A stretch of 61,838 nucleotides of DNA, filler included, from Choristocarpus tenellus KU-1152 (GCA_964200185.2; 8 parts of 8 records of this genome joined end to end with filler, not necessarily neighbours in it); one strand, 5' to 3'. Counted from the first letter of the whole stretch, positions 1-13,021 are shown. Made by a program: numbers and translations. The notes: generated by a model from the sequence alone, not told the origin.

Positions 1-25
1 CGTTTTTTTTTTGGGTGTGAGAGGG

Positions 26-57
<32 letters not shown>

Positions 58-192
58 TGGGGGGGTGAGAGGAAAAGTAAGAGATGTGTTGGTAGTCCTG
101 TCGTGGTGATTGTGGTATTGCCGGTGATTGGAGGTGACAAGGGGATTTGGATGGATGGGGGTAGGAAGGAGTTGCTCCATAATGTCACTCAG

Positions 193-1619
193 CAAGGAGA
201 AGCTCACCTTTGGTGTGCTATGGTGAACTTTGTCTGTGTGAGCCTCTCCCCATGTTTTCAAAGTATCCTCTGTTGCTACCACCCTTGCCCACTTCCAACA
301 ATGGCAGGACATTCCAAGAGGTTGTTGCTGGGACCTGGCCTGCCCTGGATCGCATAGAATCACTCTCCTTTAAGGTGAAGCGAAGGGGATGGAAGCAAAA
401 AGTCACCCACTCCGCTTTGTACCCCCTTTCTGTAGCACTAGTTATAGGTGTACGGGCATGTAGCTGTTCACTTCGAACAATAGATGTGTAGATAGTGGAA
501 CCTTGACATCTGGTGGATGCACTGACAGTTATTTACTGCCCACATAACTGACTTTCAATGTCTCTGCTCCAACTCACAACACCCCTTGAAGGTCCTTGAA
601 TCCACCATGACACGTGCCCCACCCAGGCCGGCCTGGGTGCTCTGATGGGTTGCGCGATGTGCTGGGGAAGTAAGGTGGGCATATACCACCTGGTGTTCCT
701 TCCGATCATTTGTCTTGAACTGCAGGGAGGAGTGCCCTCCATTTGGGGAGCCGTCGATCTATGCGCACTGTGCATGGTGGCTGCAGGTTAGTGATGTGCC
801 ATCACCGTTGAGCGGGAATGAGTCTGGTAGCCTCATGAAGGATACTTGTATGGACTCTGAAGTAGTAGTGAGGGATTGAGGAAGTGACTCTCTGTTTGTT
901 TTGGGAGCATAAACTTGCTCCAAGTTATGGCCCGCTCACCTTGCCCCGTGTAGAGCAATGAGAACCTCTTTGGAGGAGGAGTAAAGAAAATCTGTTGTGT
1001 GTTGTGTACAAAACCGTTGAGTGTATGCTGGTGCATTGTGTTTTATTCAAGTGTATCTCATGGTCGTATCATTTGTGTCTCCTTACTACATATCTCAATT
1101 GTGTCAGAACAACAAGCCGTTGCTTCCCCCCTTCACTCTTCATTGATCTCATAACCATTGCCAACACTTCCACCTCTCTCTCAACTCAAAGGTCTGTGCA
1201 TGGCACATGCCCTGCGTCCAAGGGGGCCGTGGGACCTCAAGCTTGCCCGCCGGGGCTTTCGCACCAATGTCTTGTTTGGAGACTTTGTTGAGGTGGCATA
1301 CCCCTTCATGGAGCGCAGCCCCCTATGTTGCCTTGCTGGGTACATCGGTGCAGCTCTCTCAGGTGTCTTGATTGCCATTTCTGGAGCCCGGTCGTGTGCC
1401 TATTTACCTCTTCCCCTAGCCTTGGCCATCTCAAATCGACCTGTATGGCTTGCTGGGGCAGCGTTGGCCGCGTTCTTGCCCCCCTTCATGGCAGGTTTGT
1501 GCCAAGTTCCATCAAGGTGCCAACCTCAAAATGATACGATCACTCCCTGTTCTTCCTCCACACATGCCTCGCAGTGGTCCTCTCCCAGTGAGGAGGTTGG
1601 TAAGAAGAAAAATGCCTGA
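193..1619 (+). CDS. PTS EIIC-like (PTS_EIIC_2-type) multi-pass membrane protein, 5'-partial; exons ~193-374, 627-786, 1192-1619
   Basis: GT-AG introns join in phase (AAG|gtgaag..ccag|GCC; GCA G|gttagt..aaag|GT CTG). Spliced peptide AGLGALMGCAMCWGSKVGIYHLVFLPIICLELQGGVPSIWGAVDLCALCMVAAGLCMAHALRPR...TNVLFGDFVEVAYPFMERSPLCCLAGYIGAALSGVLIAISGARSCAYLPLPLALAISN follows the motif order I recall for bacterial 'PTS sugar transporter' IIC-like proteins (GxYHxxxLPIxxLE..S.xGAxD..LxMVxAG; FGxFVExAYPFM; AYxP). Ends KKKNA*. The first exon is less certain. Confidence 0.72.
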
Positions 1620-2618
1620 GCGGCAACTTAAGGAGGATATTGGAGGAGGAGAAGGTAGAGGTAGGGCTGGGTGAGAACGATACTTTTGCTTTGTTTCCCA
1701 AGTGATTTTTTACTTTTTTGTACTCCTCTTCCTCAGAGTCACACATCTCAGAAGAGAAATAAATGGAGGCCTGAGGATGGGATAGGCGGAAAGCACCAGC
1801 ATTTGGTAGTGCCAGAAAGTTCTATTCATAGTGCAACAAAGTTGACTTGTATCGATGCTTTTGCATGGCTTAAGAGTTCCTGTTGGAGAGGATGGAGAAC
1901 AGCCACCTTTCTTACGGGGGTCTCTAGCTAGAGTGGCTGGAAAGGAGTACCGTGTATTAGGTTAAGATTTTGTCTCCAGCACGCCCAGCACTTGGTGTGC
2001 AGACTTCCTTCAATGCTGGAATAGACTGGAATAATCAAAAGCAATCGTTGTCCACAAGGACTTGAGAGGGAAATGGAATATTCTCGAGGTGGTTTATGGG
2101 ATAGCCTGCACGTGCTTGCATTAGAAGGAGAGCGTGGTGTGGAGCCTCCTTCCACATTCCATCCTTGCAGCAATTGTATACTCAGTATTGTTAATCGTAA
2201 GTGTATACTCCTGATGTAGTTGTATGGATGGATGGTCTATTATCTTTTTTTTTGTTTTTGTTATACAATGAGGGGGGAAACCCACCAGGTGTATGGAACC
2301 ACTGAAGTGATACGTGAGAGATTGCAACTTGATGAGCTCTCTGTGATTTGTACTCTCGAATACCATGCGCATACTCTCACCTTTAAGTATTCTTGCATGT
2401 GACGTATTTGCTCTCATGAATTAGGGTGTCTCAACATTTAATATCTATGCTAAAGAGGTACCTAGAGACATCCGAGGAGGGGCAGTCCACAAGGGAGGGC
2501 GTATGAGACAAACCACAGTATCTGCTTGCAAGACCGAAAAGGATGACCCTTTTGTCAATACTTGGCAAACGGAACTATGTAGAAAGGAGGTACATATTGA
2601 ACTTGGAGGGAGAGATTG

Positions 2619-2876
2619 GAGTCAAACCAGCTGAGAGGTAGGCAGGGTTGCATTTTTAGGATCCTGAGCAAGGACAAAAAGATACCGTTTTGTACAGCTA
2701 CAGAAAGAGCCTTTGATGAATTGTAGTGTTGTTTTTTGCGTGTGAAGGGGGAATATCGATTTTCCATACACTATTGTCGACATAAGGCAATGACATATCG
2801 TGTATTGGACAAACTAAGAAAGATGGCTTAGAATGCAAATGGTCCAAACTTTCCCACCTCTCAGTTGGTTTGGCTC
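2619..2876. mobile_element. MITE family B (Sola2-like, non-autonomous), 258 bp
   Basis: TIRs GAGTCAAACCAGCTGAGAGGTAGG / CCCACCTCTCAGTTGGTTTGGCTC; flanks ATTG/ATTC (3 of 4 match); homologous to 25969-26552. Confidence 0.8.
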
Positions 2877-3324
2877 ATTCTCAAGAAACCATAGTAGTGG
2901 TTGAAAACGTTCTATGCAGGTAAGCAATGGAATGATTAGACGACACGCCTTACACTCATTGAAATGGAACTTTGTGAGTGGTAGTTAAACACAAGATAGG
3001 CACTTTATGGTGATTTGGTTCTTGATCAAAATCGACTTTACATTGTTTCTACTTAAATACTCGAGGTTGAACATTTCAATGTGCACGGATGAGCACAACA
3101 TGGATCAATGTACATATATGAAGAGTTTGCCTCTCCTGCACACTGTACATACCCTTTCAGTTTCTTGCAATGGGGGGGTTCTGTGGTACTTGGGCTGAGT
3201 ATCAGATACCCTCTAGAATTTTGTGGGGTGTTTGCACACTATGTACAGGAATAAAACATTTAATTGGTACTTTGAATAATAGTGGTGAGTTCATCAAAAG
3301 CAACATTTGTGCTGCACCAAACAA

Positions 3325-4044
3325 TTAGAAATCCAGCCTAGACCTCTTTGTATCCAGTCGGGGAACTGAAGCATTACAAGCTGAAGTAAAGCAAACATCC
3401 TTGTCATCCATGAGACTCGTCAGGATACTGGCAAGCAACACTTCCACCGCCTCATGCCCGATGTTGCTGGTCAATTCATCTTCCATTTTTCTATGTAGGG
3501 ACACATAGGTTGTGACGGTTGTTCTTCATATGTGTAGGCAGAACTTTACTGACACAGCATTCAACAAGTCCAAGTATATTTAATGCACAGAGGTAACGCA
3601 TGCATGCATATATCCTTCCCGTTACTGGACTCCTCCTTGGGATGATGGACCGTAGGCTATGCACTATGTGATGGTTAATACTCGTATTGTTCACTTTGTT
3701 GCACTATTTAGAGCACATCAATACACCAAGCATAGGATGTCCACGCCAGGGCAAGGCCCACTCCACGCAAGATTTTCAAGCTAACTTCTTCATGTACTAG
3801 AACAACAATACTACTTAAAGGCACTGGCCGTATCGACTCTCTTGGCCCTCAGCTTATGTTCTCCAGCACAGTAAAATAAATACTCAATCTGTTCACATCT
3901 CCCTCCTTGAATCCACCGGGGAAGAAGCGAAGATCCAACTATTTCAGCAAGAATATCCCTTCCATCCATATCCTGCACTCCAAATCCACCTGTCTCCTCG
4001 ACTCCAGGTCCATCCCCTCTCACAGGTTTCTTTGCACGCCCCAT
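3325..4044 (-). CDS. Possible extra or alternative 3' exons (~3815-4044 and 3325-3490) of the adjacent minus-strand gene
   Basis: TTT AA|gtagta ... catag|A AAA ATG joins in phase: ..RVDTASAFKKMEDELTSNIGHEAVEVLLASILTSLMDDKD..RLDF*. No homology recognised; overlaps the end of the 4020-4275 exon in another frame. Confidence 0.3.
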
Positions 4045-6113
4045 GAATCTTTGGTTAAATCGTTCCCTTCCCTACCGAGTACCTTCCTTGCCTTCCCCCC
4101 TGCCTGTCTGTTCAGTGGTCCAGGTCCTGGAGCAGAATTTTCGATGACAGGCCAAGGTTTCTCCCTCAGACCCTCTAATGGTTGGCGCAAGCCAGCTAGG
4201 CATGCCTCAATAGGTCTGTCACTGGGTATAGATAGGGCCCTTTGGAGTGTCTTGGCCGACACAACCACCCCAGCGCTTGTGTAGACCAAATATGATAATT
4301 ATGAGATAGAATGCCGTGCATGGGAGACAGGGGTGTGTGGAATTATGTTGAGGGACAGGGAGAGGAGAGAGAATGGATACACGTGGTTGAGAAATTCAGG
4401 CCAGATAACTACCTGACAATGTTCATTATCCAAGAGGCAGAGAATGGGACTTATCACAAATGGCTGCGGTTTGGTTAAAGTTTGAGACCATGTACACAAT
4501 ACCTAGTAGCTCTTATCCTAGACGTGTAGGGGTAATAATTTTTGGTGGCACTCGCCTTCATATGCTTTTTTTGACGAAGAGCCTGATTCTAGATTCGCAA
4601 GTGGAAGGAGTAAAACGTGCTTCTTTTGTTCCACATTATTGTGGAACACTCGATACACCACCTCAAAGTACAACTATTGTAGTCCCTAGGTGGAACAGGT
4701 CAGAGCACAGGAAAAGAGCTCCCCAATATGAAAAGGGTAGCAATATGTGGGGAAACCAAAAGCCTCTCTACTTCGCCCCCTTCCTCGATTTTCTACTCCA
4801 GAAGGCAGAAATTTCTTTGCACTCCCTCAGCTCATCGCCTTTACATTTTTTCAAAATTCTCAGGAGCAGGAAGCACGTACCGGGCCAAGGCGTTGGAGAT
4901 ACTCTGACGCTCCGCTTCTTGTTCTTGCGCCAAGATGCTCTGGACCTGAGGTTGGGGGTGGGCACGAAAAGGAAGCAAAGGCGTCGAGCATAGGCAGCTA
5001 AGGGAGTGCCAAATCAGGCATGTGATGAAAGAAGCCAAAAAAACAAGTGATAAGGCAGCAAACTATCATCCATAAGCTATCTTTTTCCGTGATGTGTTCA
5101 TAGGCAGAAGAGATAGACTGAGGTGCTGGCTTGGGGACCATTGGTCTGCCTGTCTACACCATTTTATAGTATCTGCTCTTTCCCTCAACACTCTGTTCCT
5201 GCTGTTGTAACACAGTACATTCGGGGTGCGTGCCATCCATTGGACCTCCTCTAACCTCAACCTTAGATAGGGCCAATATTGTGTCAGACGGAGCACTCAA
5301 TAGTAAATGCTTAGTTGGGCAAGTTGATGCGAGCCCCAGCCCCCCCTGAGAAATGACTCATCTGATAAAGAGATGTTTCAATCACTGAAAGTCATCGAGG
5401 GTATTCAGGACGAAAATGCTCAATATATATATGTATGTCTAGTGACTGGGTGAGGAGCACACATGACCCCACTATGCCACTTGGCATTAATCATATGTAG
5501 TAGAGTAGGAAATACGTACGCTTTTGAATCAAGCCGCAAGGCCTTCTGTAGTTGGAAAAAATACTTAATTGTGTTCACCGACTACCCTGCCTCAGCGCCC
5601 GATTCTTCATCTGAAACCTTTTTCAGACAGGCAAAAATATTAAAAAAAAAAAGATACCATAGCCGCAAGCCCCTGAGACAAGCAATCAAACAAGCAGCTC
5701 TCTGGTAGGGCAACCTCTATACACTCAGGCGGTGTATGCCCATGAGGACATTTCCCTGCTGAGGCTGAACGTACAAGAAAGGAACTTTGGTGTGTGAAAA
5801 AATATCAAGCCTTTCCGATACATGCTTTTAAAAACAATATTCAAAGCAAAATCACGCCGGGGTAAACAGCAAATAGCAACAATAGCACATACGTACAAAG
5901 ACAACAGCATAGGAAGCCAACGAATTAATGCTATCTTCGCTACACCAGAAAATCGTCGTTAGATCACATAGGTGAGAGCGCGTGTGCAGAAGCATGAGGG
6001 AACAGAACAAACCTTTGAGCCACTGCAACTAGGGAAGTGGGCTTCCACAAAATCCCTTGCCGAAGCATACATGCACACTCTATGAACCGCCTTTCCTCCG
6101 CTGCGTTTCCCCT

Positions 6114-6144
<31 letters not shown>

Positions 6145-9100
6145 TTTCTTGACCTTGCCCCTCTTTTTCCCCTTGGGGCCCTTGCTGGACCCCACAGACC
6201 CCACGCCCCGCTTCGGCGAAGACTTTTTGCCCTCCCTTCCCCGTTTCTCCTGACCCCTTCTGGGGATCCTTTGCCCTCTCTTGCGTGGCGAAGGTTGCTT
6301 TCCTCTCCCTCCTACAGGCTTGCTGGGTATACTGCACTGAACAGCAGCAGAGTAGTGGCCCTCTATCTGTATCGGTGTTCAGTTGATGAGGGCGGTGGTC
6401 AGCGGTGCATATAACCAACCTGATCACAGTGTACGAAACCAACCTCCCCCAGAAGATATCCGTATGGAGTGAAAGTATCTTAGAAGGTACGAGTTTTGCC
6501 CTGTTTTTCCATTTGGGGCTTGGCTTCCCACGGGTTTTTAATGACATTTTAACCACTCCAAAATGTTTTTGAGTAGGTAAAATGCATACGCTATGAAAAG
6601 GTGTGTCCGGATCAAGGATATTGACATCTCCTAACAGACGTGATAGCCAAAATTACATCAAAATTGCATCCTTGGATTTTTGGCCCCCAAATGGACGCAG
6701 CTCTACCCTCTAAGATACTTTGACTCAAGGTTAGTACTGGATGGTCCTCGCCATGCACTCTAGAACAATATCAAACGCATTGTAGAATCGGTCACAACTT
6801 GTCTCTCATGTTTGGTGCCTTTATGCTGAGTGGCAGATGCCACTGCTTTCCAACTATGATCACTTGTTCGGAAGAACTGGAATATGAATGAAGGTTCGGG
6901 CTGAAGTACGTTTTCGCACTGGACTACCAAGGCCGCAGCATATACCATATGCATATGTATTATGATTCTTGTATCATCAGCAACAAAGACCTCTCTGTGA
7001 TACAACCGTGCAGCATGTAGACACCCCAAGCAAACCACTTCATCCTACAGCATTTTACTTCTGCCTGTGTCCTGTATACCCCTATGGTCGACAAAAGTAG
7101 ACCGTAACATGCAATGTATGTATGAGCATGTAGGTCAGGCGGGTACACAGGTTCCTCTTCAAATACGTTAAGCATTCGATAAGGGAGTCGGCAATCTCAA
7201 TGCAGATGATGCAGTCATGCAGGTTTTTGTATGAAATCCAGAGGAAATTATTTTCGCACTCCAGGTTTGAAACCCCCTAACTTGGAGTTACTTGCAGCAC
7301 ATCACTACTATCAAGAATATGCATTTTTGGTTGAATGGAGTGGTGTGTCGGTTCCATTAACCCTGGTTTTGCCCTAGATGCTCATGTGGTACTAGAAGTG
7401 ATAGCAGCGCATTACATTGAACTATCTGCTGCCAAGACTCATTGAATATGGGAGGCACAGCAAGAAGCAGGAAGCCATAGACGATGGTAAGAACGCTATA
7501 GCCCAGGAATTTCCCCTCCCCTAGTACAAATTGCTGAAGTTGAAATCCTGGAACAGCGACTCTGATGTGAGCCACCAAGTGCTTGTCAAGTCTTTGTATT
7601 GTCTAAGTGAGATAGAACATAAAGCACCCCTTTGATTTGCATTTCGACCCTGTAGAAAATCGGGATGGCTGATTATTTCGGTTGCATGGAGTTTGAATCT
7701 ACCTCTAACATAGGGCATGTACTCAACCACAAAAAAGAAAATATACATTTTTATTGTAGTACTCCGAAGTACAAGTTAATTGTTGCTTTTGTCTCCACAC
7801 CTTCATTAGCAAAAGTTCAACCTCCAATAATGAGTGCGCCAGAATAAATATTTCTTGCATTGTTTGTAGTATTTGCGAGAACCTTTGCCATTAGGCAGAT
7901 ACAGAGTACACTTCATGGCTTCCTATTGCTCCCCTGATTGATCATGCTCGGACGGGGCATAAGAGAAGAAACATTTATCATTCGGAATAGAGTGGCACCA
8001 GTATAAATTAGGTGTTCTATTGAACTATACCTTTGAAATAAGATTATTGCAGGTATGTTTTTTTTTAGATCTATGGGCAAGGAGTATCTAGAATATGGTG
8101 GTGGGTATAATCAGATGCCGAAGGGTTTACTTGAAGAGTTTTCCATGTACCAGTACTGCACAGATCTTTTTAGAAACTGATGCTACAAGAGGGCCAGAGC
8201 AACCAGAATCCAGGCACAACAGGTATCCTTACCACCAGTTATTGTGGGAAAATCCTCACAAGCACAAAAAAACGTTAATGCAAACTTGCACTCTCAAGCT
8301 CCCTTCTTCCCTGCATCACTGTGTTTCACCCCAATCTTCCCACTAGACCCATCAATGTAGATTAGAACATTTCAATCTGCACAGAGTACTATTGCCCCAC
8401 CTGGGCCAGAGTCCCTTCAGACAGTACTTCTCTCCTGCTTTCTAACTCCAGCTGCTGGTAGCTTAGCTCAGCATCATCAAGTCCTAGTGTGCGTGCTGAT
8501 GAAACAGCTGAAACTGCTGACTGTATGGTCGGTCGGGTGTCCACCCACCTTTGGAATGCTGCAGAGGATGACCTGGAGAACTGCCCTGCCTCAGGCACAG
8601 TAGTAGCACCTGATGCTGGACGGCTTTTATCATCTTTGTACCCATCCCACTTTGTAATGGCAGTTGTGATCTGTGCTTGCATTTATTAGAGTGTGGGTGA
8701 TTTTGGTAATGAAAGAGTTGGTAGGGAGCGTGAGGTAATGGGAAAAGGAATGGGGCCAATGATGCTACTGAAGCAAAGAGACTGAGTACTGGCATTGAGA
8801 AATAAGGAAGAGAACATTTTCCTCTTCACGCAGAATGCATTGAAATGGGGAAACACTCAGGGGTCCCTCCTTACAAGTTACTTCTGTGTACCAAATACTT
8901 GAAAATGTTTTCAAAAAATATATCAAAGAGGAACCTGCTGTTGATTGGTGTGAAGCATTCTACTCTTTATGGAGAGGCATAGGCATAGATACAGGAAGAA
9001 CTCGAGGTGTTGCTGCAGAATGTGCACTTCGTATGAGGTGTGCTCTGCTACAATCTGGAACATACCACAACTTTTCTCTATTGACATCGTAGTGCAATTC

Positions 9101-10763
9101 CTCAACCAAGATATGAAAGACAGAGACCACTACAGATATACTATCTATTGCGACAAACAACAAAAAACATCAGAGTCTCCACCTACATCTCGTTGGGGCA
9201 CACTATGCCCCATTGTTGAACGTCCCATTGTTGAGCCAGTTCTTCTCACAGCAGCCAAGGTTTTGGCATTATTTGAGGAGGCCACATCACTCGATCTTCT
9301 TTGATTTGCAGCTGATTGTACCTCCGCTCTCCTCCTTTGTGCTGAAGCAACAGCCCTCCTGATATGTGGTGGGATGAAGAGACTATCTGCTGCTCCTTTA
9401 GGAAGTAACCTGTTGGCAGGAGCTGATGATGGTCTGCACTTAATTATCAGTGGCACCCTTGCTGCTACTACTGCTGGTGACCTTTCCCGCATGACCTCTG
9501 TGGCACTCACAATGGTTGAGCCTGTCTGTGTATTCCTCCACTGAGAACCTGCGGTTGAACGAATTGAAATGCCTCTAGCAGAACTGGGCCTTTCCAATTC
9601 CCTAACACCCTTGCGATCCCTGGAGGAATAGCGACGCTCTAGTATAGAAATCCGGTCATCAATGTCATCGTTATCTTCCCCAGGGTCCTCATAGATGTCT
9701 TCACCCATCAATGAGGGATCGTCAGGATGTTGCTGCGAACGAGCATTATTGCCACATTCCACACCCACAATGTCTGCTGCATGCCTTGACGCAGTGTCAT
9801 TGGTCATCTGACTCACCTTGTCATTTGGTTGCCAGGTTCCCAGCCTTGGCACAGCGGAGGCGGGTCTTCCCTCCACACCCATCCCCACACTTACCCTTCT
9901 CTCCACCAGAACCCCCTTCATCCCTGCATGCTCATTCAAAGACCGTGAGTAGTGTGGATAAGCTGATGATGCCCGACTGGGTGCTACCCTTTCTTCTGTG
10001 TAAGATGCAGTAGCCGCAGATATAGGACGAGAGGCTGGATGGCTTATGCTAGGATGATTCGGATGATACCCAATTCTTGATGCTGAGGCAAACCGAGAGC
10101 ATTCATTCCTCCAGAGGGTCCTAGACTCCAGCCGGGATCTGCACTAGCGGTGGGTGACGAGAGGGAAACGTGCAGGCAGTACTACTGCAGTTGGATTAGA
10201 TGAGGGTGAATGGGTTCACGATTTCTGTGACTGATTATGTCACAGTTGTCCAAGGGTGGTTGTTGTTCAACTGATGCCACGATACTTGGCGCCATCCGCA
10301 CATGAAAATGACAATCCAGCACTCACTTTTCCAAAGCCCATTGGTGTATGGCCTTGCGAACCCCAGCCTTTATTTCTTTTGTGACTGAAGAAAAGTTAGT
10401 GTAGTAGTTCTCTACCCTGCGTTCTCCAGTTTCGTCGACTTTGGCATTAGCACTCTCCCTCGCTTCTGGTGGAGTGTGCTCGCTGGGATCACGAACATTG
10501 CCCGACCTGCCCCAACTTCTGAAGAGACAAAAAGGGTTGCTAGGAAGTGGTCTTCGATGAATCCTAGCATTGGCATCGAGGACGGCCTTGTGCGCTTCTC
10601 TGTTGAGGCTGATGACTCCGTATGTGTTCGTCAACACGGTTACCGCTGATTGTGTAAATACCGCTTCATCTTTGCCTGGGAAACTCTTTGTGGTCCTCCC
10701 TCTGCGTCGTCTGGGTGACTTGGACCTTCTCTTTCTAGCGATATTAGGCATTTCTCCTGACAC
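4020..10763 (-). CDS. Uncharacterised multi-exon, largely disordered/basic protein (possibly flagellar/centrosomal); exons include 10327-10763, ~9190-10140, 8401-8670, 6013-6366, 4881-4945, 4020-4275
   Basis: Long ORFs bounded by splice sites (aa|gtgagt at 10326; cag|gtgggg at 8400; aag|gtttgt at 6012; cg|gtacgt at 4880). Recurring RPISA/RPASA/RPSSA/RPASG motifs and a K/R/S-rich block. The last two exons join as VQSILAQEQEAERQSISNALARAGVVVSAKTLQRALSIPSDRPIEACLAGLRQPLEGLREKPW. Several internal exons are unresolved. Confidence 0.6.
6467..6726 (+). mobile_element. MITE family A (Sola2-like), intronic copy
   Basis: ~23-bp TIRs GAGTGAAAGTATCTTAGAAGGTA / TACCCTCTAAGATACTTTGACTC; interior shared with the other full copies; TSD degenerate. 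Confidence 0.85.
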
Positions 10764-11051
10764 TCCTATCCTCTCATTCTGCTCACTTCGCCACCCGACC
10801 TCTCCGTTTTACCAAGTACCTCCGAGCACGTTTTTGGATCCTTTAGCACACAACTGGTGGCGGTTTCACGGAGTAACCGTAGCCCACTCTCTAGAAATAC
10901 CAGTACAATTATTACGTAGTTTGAACTAGTGCGTGAGAGATATAGACCATTAGCTTTGCCTGTGGCAATTGCTTGGAGTCGAACTCGATGTGCCAAAGAG
11001 AGTTGAGAGAAAACCTCAATGTGGGTGAGCAGGAGAGAAAGAGACAATTCG
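10764..11051. promoter_or_regulatory. Putative bidirectional promoter (288 bp between divergent ATGs)
   Basis: ATG at 10763 (-) and ATG at 11052 (+) point away from each other; inferred from gene arrangement only. Confidence 0.45.
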
Positions 11052-12999
11052 ATGGGACCATTGCTTAGAAGACATGATCACTCGGATAGGTTGGAAGAGT
11101 ACCCTGGGAGCCTGAGCGATGAACTTCTGCAAGAGAGATGGCGCCCAAAGCGCCAACTTCGATCGGATAAAATACACCGAAAAATAAGTCCCTTTGACAC
11201 TTTCGGCTCGATGACACGCTCCCAAGCTGACGTGAGGGAGGATTCTATGGTCGCGAGTGAAGTTAAGCAGTGCAACTTGGCAGGAAGAGGGATAGTTGTT
11301 GAGGACCTGGAGAACGCGCTACGCCTCTGGTCGAGCCCGACTGTCCTAATAGCTGCACGCAACCTCCTTGAGCGACTGCCGTCCAACGCCCCGAGCACAA
11401 TCCTATGCCTGGATCTCTCCCGTAACAGGTCAGATATGTAACGCACGCATTTTTTATCATGACGCCAACGAGCGAAAGTATCTTAGAGGGTATGAATTTT
11501 GCCCTGTTTGTCCATTTGGGGCTTGGCTTCCCACCGTTTATTTAATGGCATTTTCCTACTCCAAAATGTTTCGAAGTAGGTTAAATGCTTATGTTATGAA
11601 AATGTGTGTTCGGAACAAGGATAATGGCACTTCCTAACAAAATAATAGCCAAAATTTCATCAAAATCGCCACATTGGACTTTGGCCCCCAGATGGACACG
11701 GCTCTACCCTCTAAGATACTTTGACTCCAACACTTTCTTTCCTCACAGCGAATTCAAATCGTCAGGAACAACCCAATTATCCCTCATATAAGCGTTTTTA
11801 CAAGCGATCAAGAAGGATGGTTTTTCCCTGGGTAAGTTTCGAAATGCCAATTACGAGTCAAATTTGATCCAAGACAAAGGGTCTCACCCATCACATGTTC
11901 AGCTCGTACTCCAAAGTATGTCATGGTACAATTGTGCAGTAGGCAAGTGCTTAGGGGCCTGCATCATGTTCTTTTATCAGGTTCAGCACTGTGCTGCTTG
12001 GAGGCCATGATTTTGTGTTTTTTCCAGACAGTTGTATGCGTGCTAATGCCCTGACTTAATTCATGATTGCCCTACCACTATTATTGCTGTTGATGATACC
12101 AGGTTGCCACAACTCCAAGGGTTTGAAGCACTTCCTCACTTAAGAGAACTCGATGTGAGCCACAATAACCTTACCAGCACATGTGGCCTAGCCACCAACA
12201 CGGAGTTGAGTGTGTTAAAGATGTCTCACAACCGTGCCCGCTGTGTGGAGGCACTTGAACAGCTCAAGAAACTCAAGGAGGTAAGAGTAGCAATTGAACA
12301 GTATCAGATAATGAGGCTCAAATTAGGCAGGTGGAATCACTACTACTATAAATAATGTTTCTAGACAGTACAAGACAAAGAATTCACCACTACACTACTT
12401 CAGTCCTTCGCACCCCCATTGATCTCTCTTCTACTGCATTGGACCAATTTAACAACCTTGACATCATCTGCACAAGCTATCTCACGCTCTATGCCCCCCT
12501 TGAAAGCACATGCAACCCTCCTCCACGTACCAATGCTTAGTTTACCTACAAAATCTTGATTTGACAGGCAGACCTGTCCCACAATCTTTTCCGATTTTCT
12601 ATGGACGTGAGGTCACTGTCTCTCAATGCTGCCCTTCGATCCCTACGTATGGATGGAAACCCACTCTGCTCTGCTGGTGGCACCCGAGACAGCTACCGTT
12701 TGCTCCTTCAACACCTGTTGCCAGCTATCACTCAACTTGATGGTCAACCCAGTCGACCTGTCTGTGGGATTGTCAACCCCAAGTCGAAGGTATCAGGTGC
12801 AGATAAAGACAGCAGGCAACGGAGCAGCTGGCTACCATCTTCCGCTTATGAGCCAAAGTCTGAAGGGTGCACAACCGTGCAACGGGGATCATACACTGCC
12901 CTGTACAAGGCCCGCTCAGGGCGGCAGGAGACACTGTCACAGGAGACAGGGCCACTGGATTCAGGGGCTGCACCACAACAGGCTGTGAGACGAGCCAAG
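11052..12999 (+). CDS. SDS22-like leucine-rich repeat protein with LRRcap, 3'-partial; exons 11052-11428, 12103-12280, 12568-12999
   Basis: In-phase GT-AG joins give LRRs ILCLDLSRNRL, LRELDVSHNNL, LSVLKMSHNRA, LKEADLSHNLF, LRSLRMDGNPLC and an LRRcap-like YRLLLQHLLPAITQLDG; donor aag|gtaaag just before the contig end. Confidence 0.85.
11470..11727 (+). mobile_element. MITE family A in intron 1 of the LRR gene
   Basis: TIRs GAGCGAAAGTATCTTAGAGGGTA / TACCCTCTAAGATACTTTGACTC; perfect 4-bp TSD CAAC/CAAC. Confidence 0.9.
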
Positions 13000-13021
13000 G
13001 TAAAGGGGGGAGAGGGGGTGA

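Follow-up and report, generated by a model that had tools for sequence, protein, structure and literature searches.

Locus and gene model

The window analysed here is a 61,838-nucleotide stretch of DNA from the brown alga Choristocarpus tenellus KU-1152 (GCA_964200185.2), made of eight assembly records joined end to end with filler, and it begins with contig C1612 (13,021 bases; window position 1 is position 1 of this contig) of an assembly of 164 Mb in 27,310 contigs. The plus-strand coding pair 627-786 and 1192-1619 constitutes the last two exons of a nuclear gene whose membrane domain, as modelled on an orthologue, has the fold of enzyme IIC (EIIC), the membrane permease of the bacterial phosphoenolpyruvate (PEP):sugar phosphotransferase system (PTS), and whose N-terminal domain is encoded on another contig (Table 1). 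An earlier note, made from the sequence of the window, had placed an intron-containing gene for a PTS EIIC-like permease at 193-1619. Its two exons proved real, while neither orthologues nor the family profile significantly matched 193-626, which therefore holds no supported exon, the gene being cut by the contig start. The motifs quoted in that note were all found on the plus strand in frame 3, with GIYHLVFLPIICLE and SIWGAVDL..LCMVAAG within 627-786, and NVLFGDFVEVAYPFM and AYLP within 1192-1619.

Table 1. Features of contig C1612, with the parts of the EIIC-like gene listed before the transposable elements (MITE, miniature inverted-repeat transposable element).
Feature	Position	Strand	Remarks
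G-rich low-complexity tract	1..73		First bases of the contig; assembly break inside an intron of the gene
3' part of intron	74..626	+	AG acceptor at 625-626; homology supports no exon
Penultimate coding exon, 53 codons plus 1 base	627..786	+	Invariant G-x-Y-H...P...E...G..D block of the EIIC-like domain
Spliceosomal intron, 405 nt, GT..AG	787..1191	+	Position conserved in contig L002 of another alga
Last coding exon	1192..1619	+	FGDFVE..YPF (GITE-like) and AYLP motifs; TGA stop at 1617-1619
MITE, 260 bp, 23-nt terminal inverted repeats	6467..6726		Inverted repeat I2
Second copy of the same MITE family	11470..11727		Inverted repeat I3, same terminal repeats

The exons were searched separately, and the joined form was used solely as the NCBI product P0001 (142 aa, 'unnamed protein product, partial [Choristocarpus tenellus]'), whose gene model on C1612 uses the 786|1192 junction. 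Splice signals were present at all three boundaries (AG at 625-626, GT at 787-788, AG at 1190-1191). In L002, a genomic contig of another alga (Logan run SRR23272287), both exons were kept (76% and 56% identity), the similarity being confined to them and bounded by the splice sites; introns and upstream DNA were not conserved. Ectocarpus P0003 (470 aa) aligned with P0001 at 62% identity (E 5e-58), the alignment crossing the junction with a sole gap of one residue, located earlier in the first of the two exons. At the level of sequence comparison, P0001, L002, and P0003 thus confirm both exons as well as the junction that the earlier note had proposed. The two sequencing runs holding this stretch consisted of DNA-like contigs reading through the introns, with no joints in them.

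Conservation of the last exon continued to about 1499, and the hydrophilic tail at 1500-1616, predicted to be coding, was not conserved in Ectocarpus or L002. An alternative donor GT at 1493|1494 was rejected and read-through at 1494 was kept, because conservation with Ectocarpus and L002 runs beyond that donor.

Remaining exons and assembly gap

P0001 matched the last 140-165 residues of relatives 470-600 aa long, and the window exons correspond to the C-terminal third of the gene and to the C-terminal half of the EIIC-like domain. Searching the genome with P0003 located the 5' exons on contig C9415, arranged colinearly on a single strand and extending to C9415:5239, with a start codon directly before VALVGSSGGG, and revealed no second copy of the gene. 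The exons on C9415, which encode the N-terminal domain and the first part of the membrane domain, were open and conserved. Family profile positions 84-162 were missing both from the tail of C9415 and from window 1-626, and therefore at least one exon is placed, by profile coverage, in an unassembled gap between C9415 and C1612. G-runs were present at the facing contig ends (window 1-73 and C9415 5820-5860), contigs from the sequencing runs were cut at 1-73, and one X2 contig reached about 160 bases upstream of window position 1; the assembly probably broke on this G-rich intron tract.

Two irregularities were noted in the 5' part of the gene and its models. Compared with the family profile, the reading frame at C9415 4739-5239 has ~55 extra residues after the first membrane helix and ahead of the next conserved block, which may be either a loop particular to this lineage or an intron that escaped recognition. 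Ectocarpus models P0156, P0159, and P0160 (790-812 aa) carry an extra ~260 residues before VALVGSSGGG that are absent from all other members, and these may represent a genuine extension in this lineage or the fusion of a neighbouring gene model.

Two-domain family in bacteria and eukaryotes

A phmmer search of 1.84 billion representative sequences produced 253 relatives, full-length at 470-600 aa (the complete protein is about 520-560 aa in relatives, and bacterial members are about 525 aa), with the query corresponding to their C-terminal 140 aa. Bacterial and eukaryotic members were colinear over both domains, an N-terminal domain of ~180 aa followed by a membrane domain of ~340 aa, for which separate alignments were made (A2 for the N-terminal part, A1 for the membrane part). 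Of the conserved membrane-domain positions, all 10 invariant ones and 8 of the 12 near-invariant ones fall in the window exons, and all 18 were kept. The Choristocarpus gene is accordingly classed by sequence as a member of this family (N-terminal alpha/beta plus EIIC-like), because the window matches the C-terminal part, and C9415 holds the exons for the N-terminal domain and first membrane segment in the same strand order.

Bacterial members were annotated as 'PTS sugar transporter' or 'fructose-specific PTS IIC component', in agreement with the earlier note, and came from Rubrobacter, Sporolactobacillus, Paenibacillus, Saccharopolyspora, Rothia, Spirochaetaceae, Pseudomonadota, a Planctomycetota metagenome-assembled genome (MAG), and Brevibacterium. 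These two-domain proteins (Rubrobacter MBA2692351.1, Sporolactobacillus RYL97418.1, and others) share the domains and invariant residues of the eukaryotic ones at about 30-36% identity, but lie on the other side of the tree, and have neither introns nor the loop insertions that occur in many of the eukaryotic proteins. Eukaryotic members, all unnamed proteins, were found in Ectocarpus, Discosporangium, Phaeothamnion, Cyclotella/Stephanocyclus, Diacronema, Vitrella, and Amorphochlora, with further members in MMETSP/EukProt transcriptomes and in metagenomic contigs with RRM, C2, VHP, and LRR neighbours, so that the family spans ochrophytes (including diatoms), haptophytes, chromerids, chlorarachniophytes, and picoeukaryote contigs. 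One complete member, P0109, was present in the transcriptome of the choanoflagellate Helgoeca nana (EukProt EP00037) and fell inside the eukaryotic clade; it represents either a non-photosynthetic carrier or contamination of the culture data.

Of the two Pfam families suggested in the earlier note, PF13303 (PTS_EIIC_2), likewise an EIIC-type membrane family, was rejected, with zero candidates in the genome and no match in any eukaryotic or bacterial member scanned. For PF02378, a weak similarity stood (2 of 48 members, best E 1.3e-5), but P0001 and the eukaryotic full-length proteins gave no match. Rubrobacter P0071 matched TIGR01995 (E 2.7e-11) and TIGR01996 (E 5.3e-8), scoring 42.7 bits against a TIGR01995 cut-off of 614.7. 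No eukaryotic member scored above the curated threshold of the Pfam and NCBIfam EIIC models. The searchable literature yielded no paper on EIIC-type proteins in algae or on the bacterial family, and no experimental study of transport or binding by any member.

Fold of the membrane domain

The membrane domain of the Ectocarpus orthologue (P0003:139-470) was modelled using AlphaFold2 with alignment A1, producing a model with a mean predicted local distance difference test score (pLDDT) of 93.0 and a predicted template modelling score (pTM) of 0.88. Searching this model against the PDB using Foldseek returned PTS EIIC structures for all of the best eight matches (TreB and PtsG models, Vibrio cholerae and Escherichia coli glucose IIC, ChbC, bcMalT, and MtlA; probabilities 0.98-1.00), followed by noise. 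Structural alignment using VIA-align gave Z 18.0 for E. coli IICB-Glc (8qsr_A, 311 of 332 residues, 4.1 Å), 16.6 for bcMalT (6bvg_A, 315 residues, 4.6 Å), 16.6 for V. cholerae glucose IIC (9lgt_A, 312 residues, 4.3 Å), and 15.8 for ChbC (3qnq_A, 311 residues, 4.2 Å), compared with Z 9.1 over 92 residues for the next unrelated entry. The predicted structure thus has the EIIC fold over the whole length of the membrane domain, as the earlier note had expected.

Remote homology was also detected from sequence profiles. Aligning A1 using hhalign to a canonical EIIC alignment (E. coli PtsG plus 28 PF02378 stretches taken from bacteria in whose genomes the family also occurs) gave a probability of 95.9% and E 5.6e-9 over 306 columns, indicating that the membrane domain is remotely homologous to canonical EIIC. 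Only the comparison with aligned canonical EIICs was significant; a single PtsG sequence was not enough, the family profile being not significant against it by hmmsearch and marginal by hhalign (E 0.044). In the ESM Atlas, canonical EIIC clusters were the next neighbours of the family. The hhalign alignment placed the family G-x-Y-H...P over the canonical G-L-H...P, and G-D-F-(V/I)-E over G-I-T-E, and the aligned His and Glu are both present in the window exons. By position, this His and the GITE-like Glu would take part in sugar binding.

Relative to the Glc/Fru/Lac EIIC proteins (PF02378; 8qsr, 6bvg, 3qnq), the family is alike in whole-domain fold (Z 16-18, about 311 of 332 residues) and in its YH and GDFVE motifs, whose counterparts in the alignment are the canonical sugar-site His and the GITE Glu, but identity is only about 10-13%, and all eukaryotic members remain below the Pfam threshold. 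In contrast to PTS EIIC proteins, the algal protein has no EIIB or EIIA domain and carries a different alpha/beta domain fused in front, and its gene is nuclear, eukaryotic, and intron-containing.

N-terminal domain

The N-terminal domain, encoded on C9415 and thus outside the window, was modelled as a three-layer alpha/beta structure (pLDDT 93) with glycine-rich loops (VGSSGGG, GTGGSS, GGSVATTN). Strong structural relatives were limited to its own family and a stand-alone 185-aa Bacillota protein (template modelling score, TM, 0.75). Other matches were generic, comprising type II dehydroquinase, one lobe of sugar-binding periplasmic binding protein (PBP)/LacI structures (Z 9-10), and halves of GT4 glycosyltransferases; no EIIB was found among the top 50 structural matches. 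The domain matched no known family, with a weak Peripla_BP_4 signal in 4 of 35 members. A membrane-only relative of 405 aa was found in Bacillota using the ESM Atlas, and since this and the stand-alone 185-aa protein both exist, the two domains occur split as well as fused, like PTS IIB and IIC. The N-terminal domain may accordingly be regarded as a candidate EIIB-like partner. Most eukaryotic members, including that of Choristocarpus, start a few residues before the first strand, leaving no room for a signal or transit peptide, which suggests that the N-terminal domain is cytosolic and that the membrane is a non-plastid one.

PTS components in the host and in bacterial carriers

In textbook accounts, the PEP:sugar phosphotransferase system, with its EIIC permeases, is a feature of bacteria, and neither the relay nor the permeases are known from eukaryotes. 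A profile search of the Choristocarpus assembly found no HPr (PF00381), EI-N (PF05524), EIIA_1 (PF00358), EIIA_2 (PF00359), EIIB (PF00367), PTS_IIB (PF02302), or canonical PTS_EIIC (PF02378), and each of these profiles matched in 5 to 7 of 14 control genomes. The lack of EI, HPr, EIIA, and EIIB, stated in the earlier note for eukaryotes in general, was thus observed in this assembly. Among 24 bacterial carriers, HPr and the EI N-terminal domain were both undetectable in Brevibacterium yomogidense (L032), B. jeotgali (L038), and a Mycobacteriales MAG (L045). In bacterial neighbourhoods, the gene was not located in PTS operons, and no partner recurred in more than 4 of 26 loci. PTS-independent function of the family is supported by the lack of partners in the algal genome, by the HPr/EI-less carriers, by the absence of PTS operons around the bacterial genes, and by the known lack of the relay in eukaryotes.

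Phylogeny and origin

In a maximum-likelihood tree of 80 full-length proteins, one branch separated the named bacteria from the named eukaryotes (Shimodaira-Hasegawa-like approximate likelihood ratio test, SH-aLRT, 99), and Ectocarpus grouped with Phaeothamnion, another ochrophyte (85). When a membrane-domain tree was rooted on canonical EIIC, the eukaryotes fell into a single clade (97) with P0068 (L076 4665-6254) as sister. P0068 is bacterial, its gene lying in an operon with overlapping genes of an NMT1-type ATP-binding cassette (ABC) transporter. Because the eukaryotic genes make up a single, ancient clade beside the bacterial members, the trees make it clear that the brown-alga gene was inherited within that clade, and was not recently or lineage-specifically acquired. 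For the clade as a whole, a single bacterium-to-eukaryote transfer would be the best reading, though not a settled one. The horizontal acquisition proposed in the earlier note thus stood as regards the bacterial type of the clade, but not as a transfer specific to brown algae, since the gene sits with that of another ochrophyte in a deep, eukaryote-wide clade; in that sense it partly fits a vertically inherited eukaryotic family, albeit one that is bacterial-type as a whole.

The P0068 operon, a single sighting, encodes a binding protein, a permease, and an ATPase, plus a zinc alcohol dehydrogenase, and may hint at function.

Interpretation and rival explanations

Taken together, we consider it reasonably probable that the two exons in the window are the end of a single-copy nuclear gene for a two-domain EIIC-fold protein, which was inherited by the brown alga and would act as a carrier or receptor without a phosphorelay. 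The protein would be a dimeric carrier of the elevator type or, possibly, a receptor, its ligand being a hydroxylated, sugar-like solute. Transport might be facilitated or ion-coupled, and would proceed without PEP-dependent phosphorelay or EIIB phosphorylation, with the N-terminal domain as a putative cytosolic partner in the place held by EIIB in bacteria.

Several points weigh against this interpretation. The structure was predicted for the Ectocarpus orthologue, which is 62% identical over the window part, and not for the incomplete Choristocarpus protein, in which ~80 family positions, including a near-invariant P-A-T stretch, fall in the assembly gap. Pfam and NCBIfam scans of the exons, P0001, and ten full-length relatives gave no family above threshold, and searching the family profile against PDB sequences gave noise only, with no chain found. 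Both trees were quick searches, and the canonical EIIC outgroup is very distant. The assembly is fragmented and was read exon by exon, making the absence of short PTS genes strong but not absolute. HPr was present in 21 of the 24 bacterial carriers, so that a link to the PTS is possible in bacteria.

Among the alternatives, one accepts the EIIC fold and differs in the role of the N-terminal domain, which would chemically modify or trap the incoming substrate (non-PEP group translocation), or would signal occupancy in a protein acting as a membrane sensor. The N-terminal domain equals the membrane domain in its degree of conservation, has invariant glycine-rich loops typical of phosphate or ligand binding, and always precedes EIIC, like IIB in fructose-type IIBC; its separate occurrence in Bacillota recalls PTS modularity, and its weak likeness to one PBP/LacI lobe, together with the scattered Peripla_BP_4 signal, also fits. 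However, the domain matched no kinase, EIIB, or signalling domain, its structural matches are in the range common to any Rossmann-like domain, and the invariant columns include no Cys or His that would be an obvious phospho-acceptor; we consider this alternative unlikely, though not remote. Distinctly unlikely, in our estimate, is a broader proposal of an unrecognised PTS-independent system, in which the new cytosolic alpha/beta domain replaces EIIB as partner of the EIIC elevator, for example by binding the substrate or modifying it with a non-PEP donor, and which was acquired once from bacteria by a eukaryote and retained by many algae and protists, in which it would be the sole EIIC-type transporter. 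The gene could also be a decaying relic of an old transfer, a pseudogene without function in Choristocarpus, as its incomplete assembly and unconserved C-terminal tail might suggest, but both window exons are open with all family-invariant residues kept, the intron has canonical splice sites and a conserved position, C9415 likewise holds open and conserved exons for the N-terminal part, and orthologues persist in Ectocarpus, Discosporangium, and Phaeothamnion, rendering decay very improbable.

Mannitol is a storage compound of brown algae, and there are mannitol permeases among the canonical EIIC families, which, with E. coli MtlA among the structural matches, would favour a recent acquisition specific to brown algae and tied to mannitol metabolism, a connection to which the earlier note had drawn attention. 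Such an origin is nevertheless hardly credible, as the family extends to haptophytes, diatoms, chromerids, chlorarachniophytes, picoeukaryote contigs, and a choanoflagellate transcriptome, with Ectocarpus and Phaeothamnion together inside the single eukaryotic clade; most carrier lineages do not store mannitol, which argues against a mannitol-specific origin, and the MtlA match was weaker than those to the PtsG, MalT, and ChbC structures. Bacterial contamination of the algal assembly can be virtually dismissed. The closest named relatives outside eukaryotes are bacterial, but the GT..AG introns lie at positions shared with another alga, the contig has a GC content of 42-52% and a gene density that is not bacterial, canonical PTS genes were not found anywhere in the assembly, and a MITE with thousands of copies assembly-wide lies on the same contig. 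A genome search with this MITE gave 5597 first-look candidates, and all 40 of the 40 scored were full length at 89-93% identity, hence the 260-bp MITE is a very abundant, fairly young element in Choristocarpus. Given the intron position common to another alga and the high-copy MITE, the contig is host nuclear DNA, and the argument that the earlier note had drawn from introns and host MITEs holds.

Returning to the inherited EIIC-fold carrier or receptor, the EIIC fold itself is known, and what is new here is its combination with a new fused domain in a probably PTS-independent, eukaryotic protein. An EIIC-fold protein is encoded by a conserved, intron-bearing nuclear gene across algal and protist groups, in a genome otherwise without PTS parts. 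This raises the questions of whether an EIIC elevator can act as a stand-alone carrier in nature, what role the new N-terminal partner domain plays, and which solute is moved by abundant marine algae with an EIIC-like protein. For the window itself, the result is narrower, adding one incomplete member from an early-diverging brown alga.

Other features of the contig

Seven of the longest open reading frames (ORFs) in window 1700-13021 gave no Pfam match, leaving no nameable neighbour gene, and the ORF from 12601 onward runs off the contig end. Two further inverted-repeat pairs, at 2619-2876 (51-nt arms, 73%) and at 3976-4249 (20-nt arms, 75%), are possibly MITE-like.

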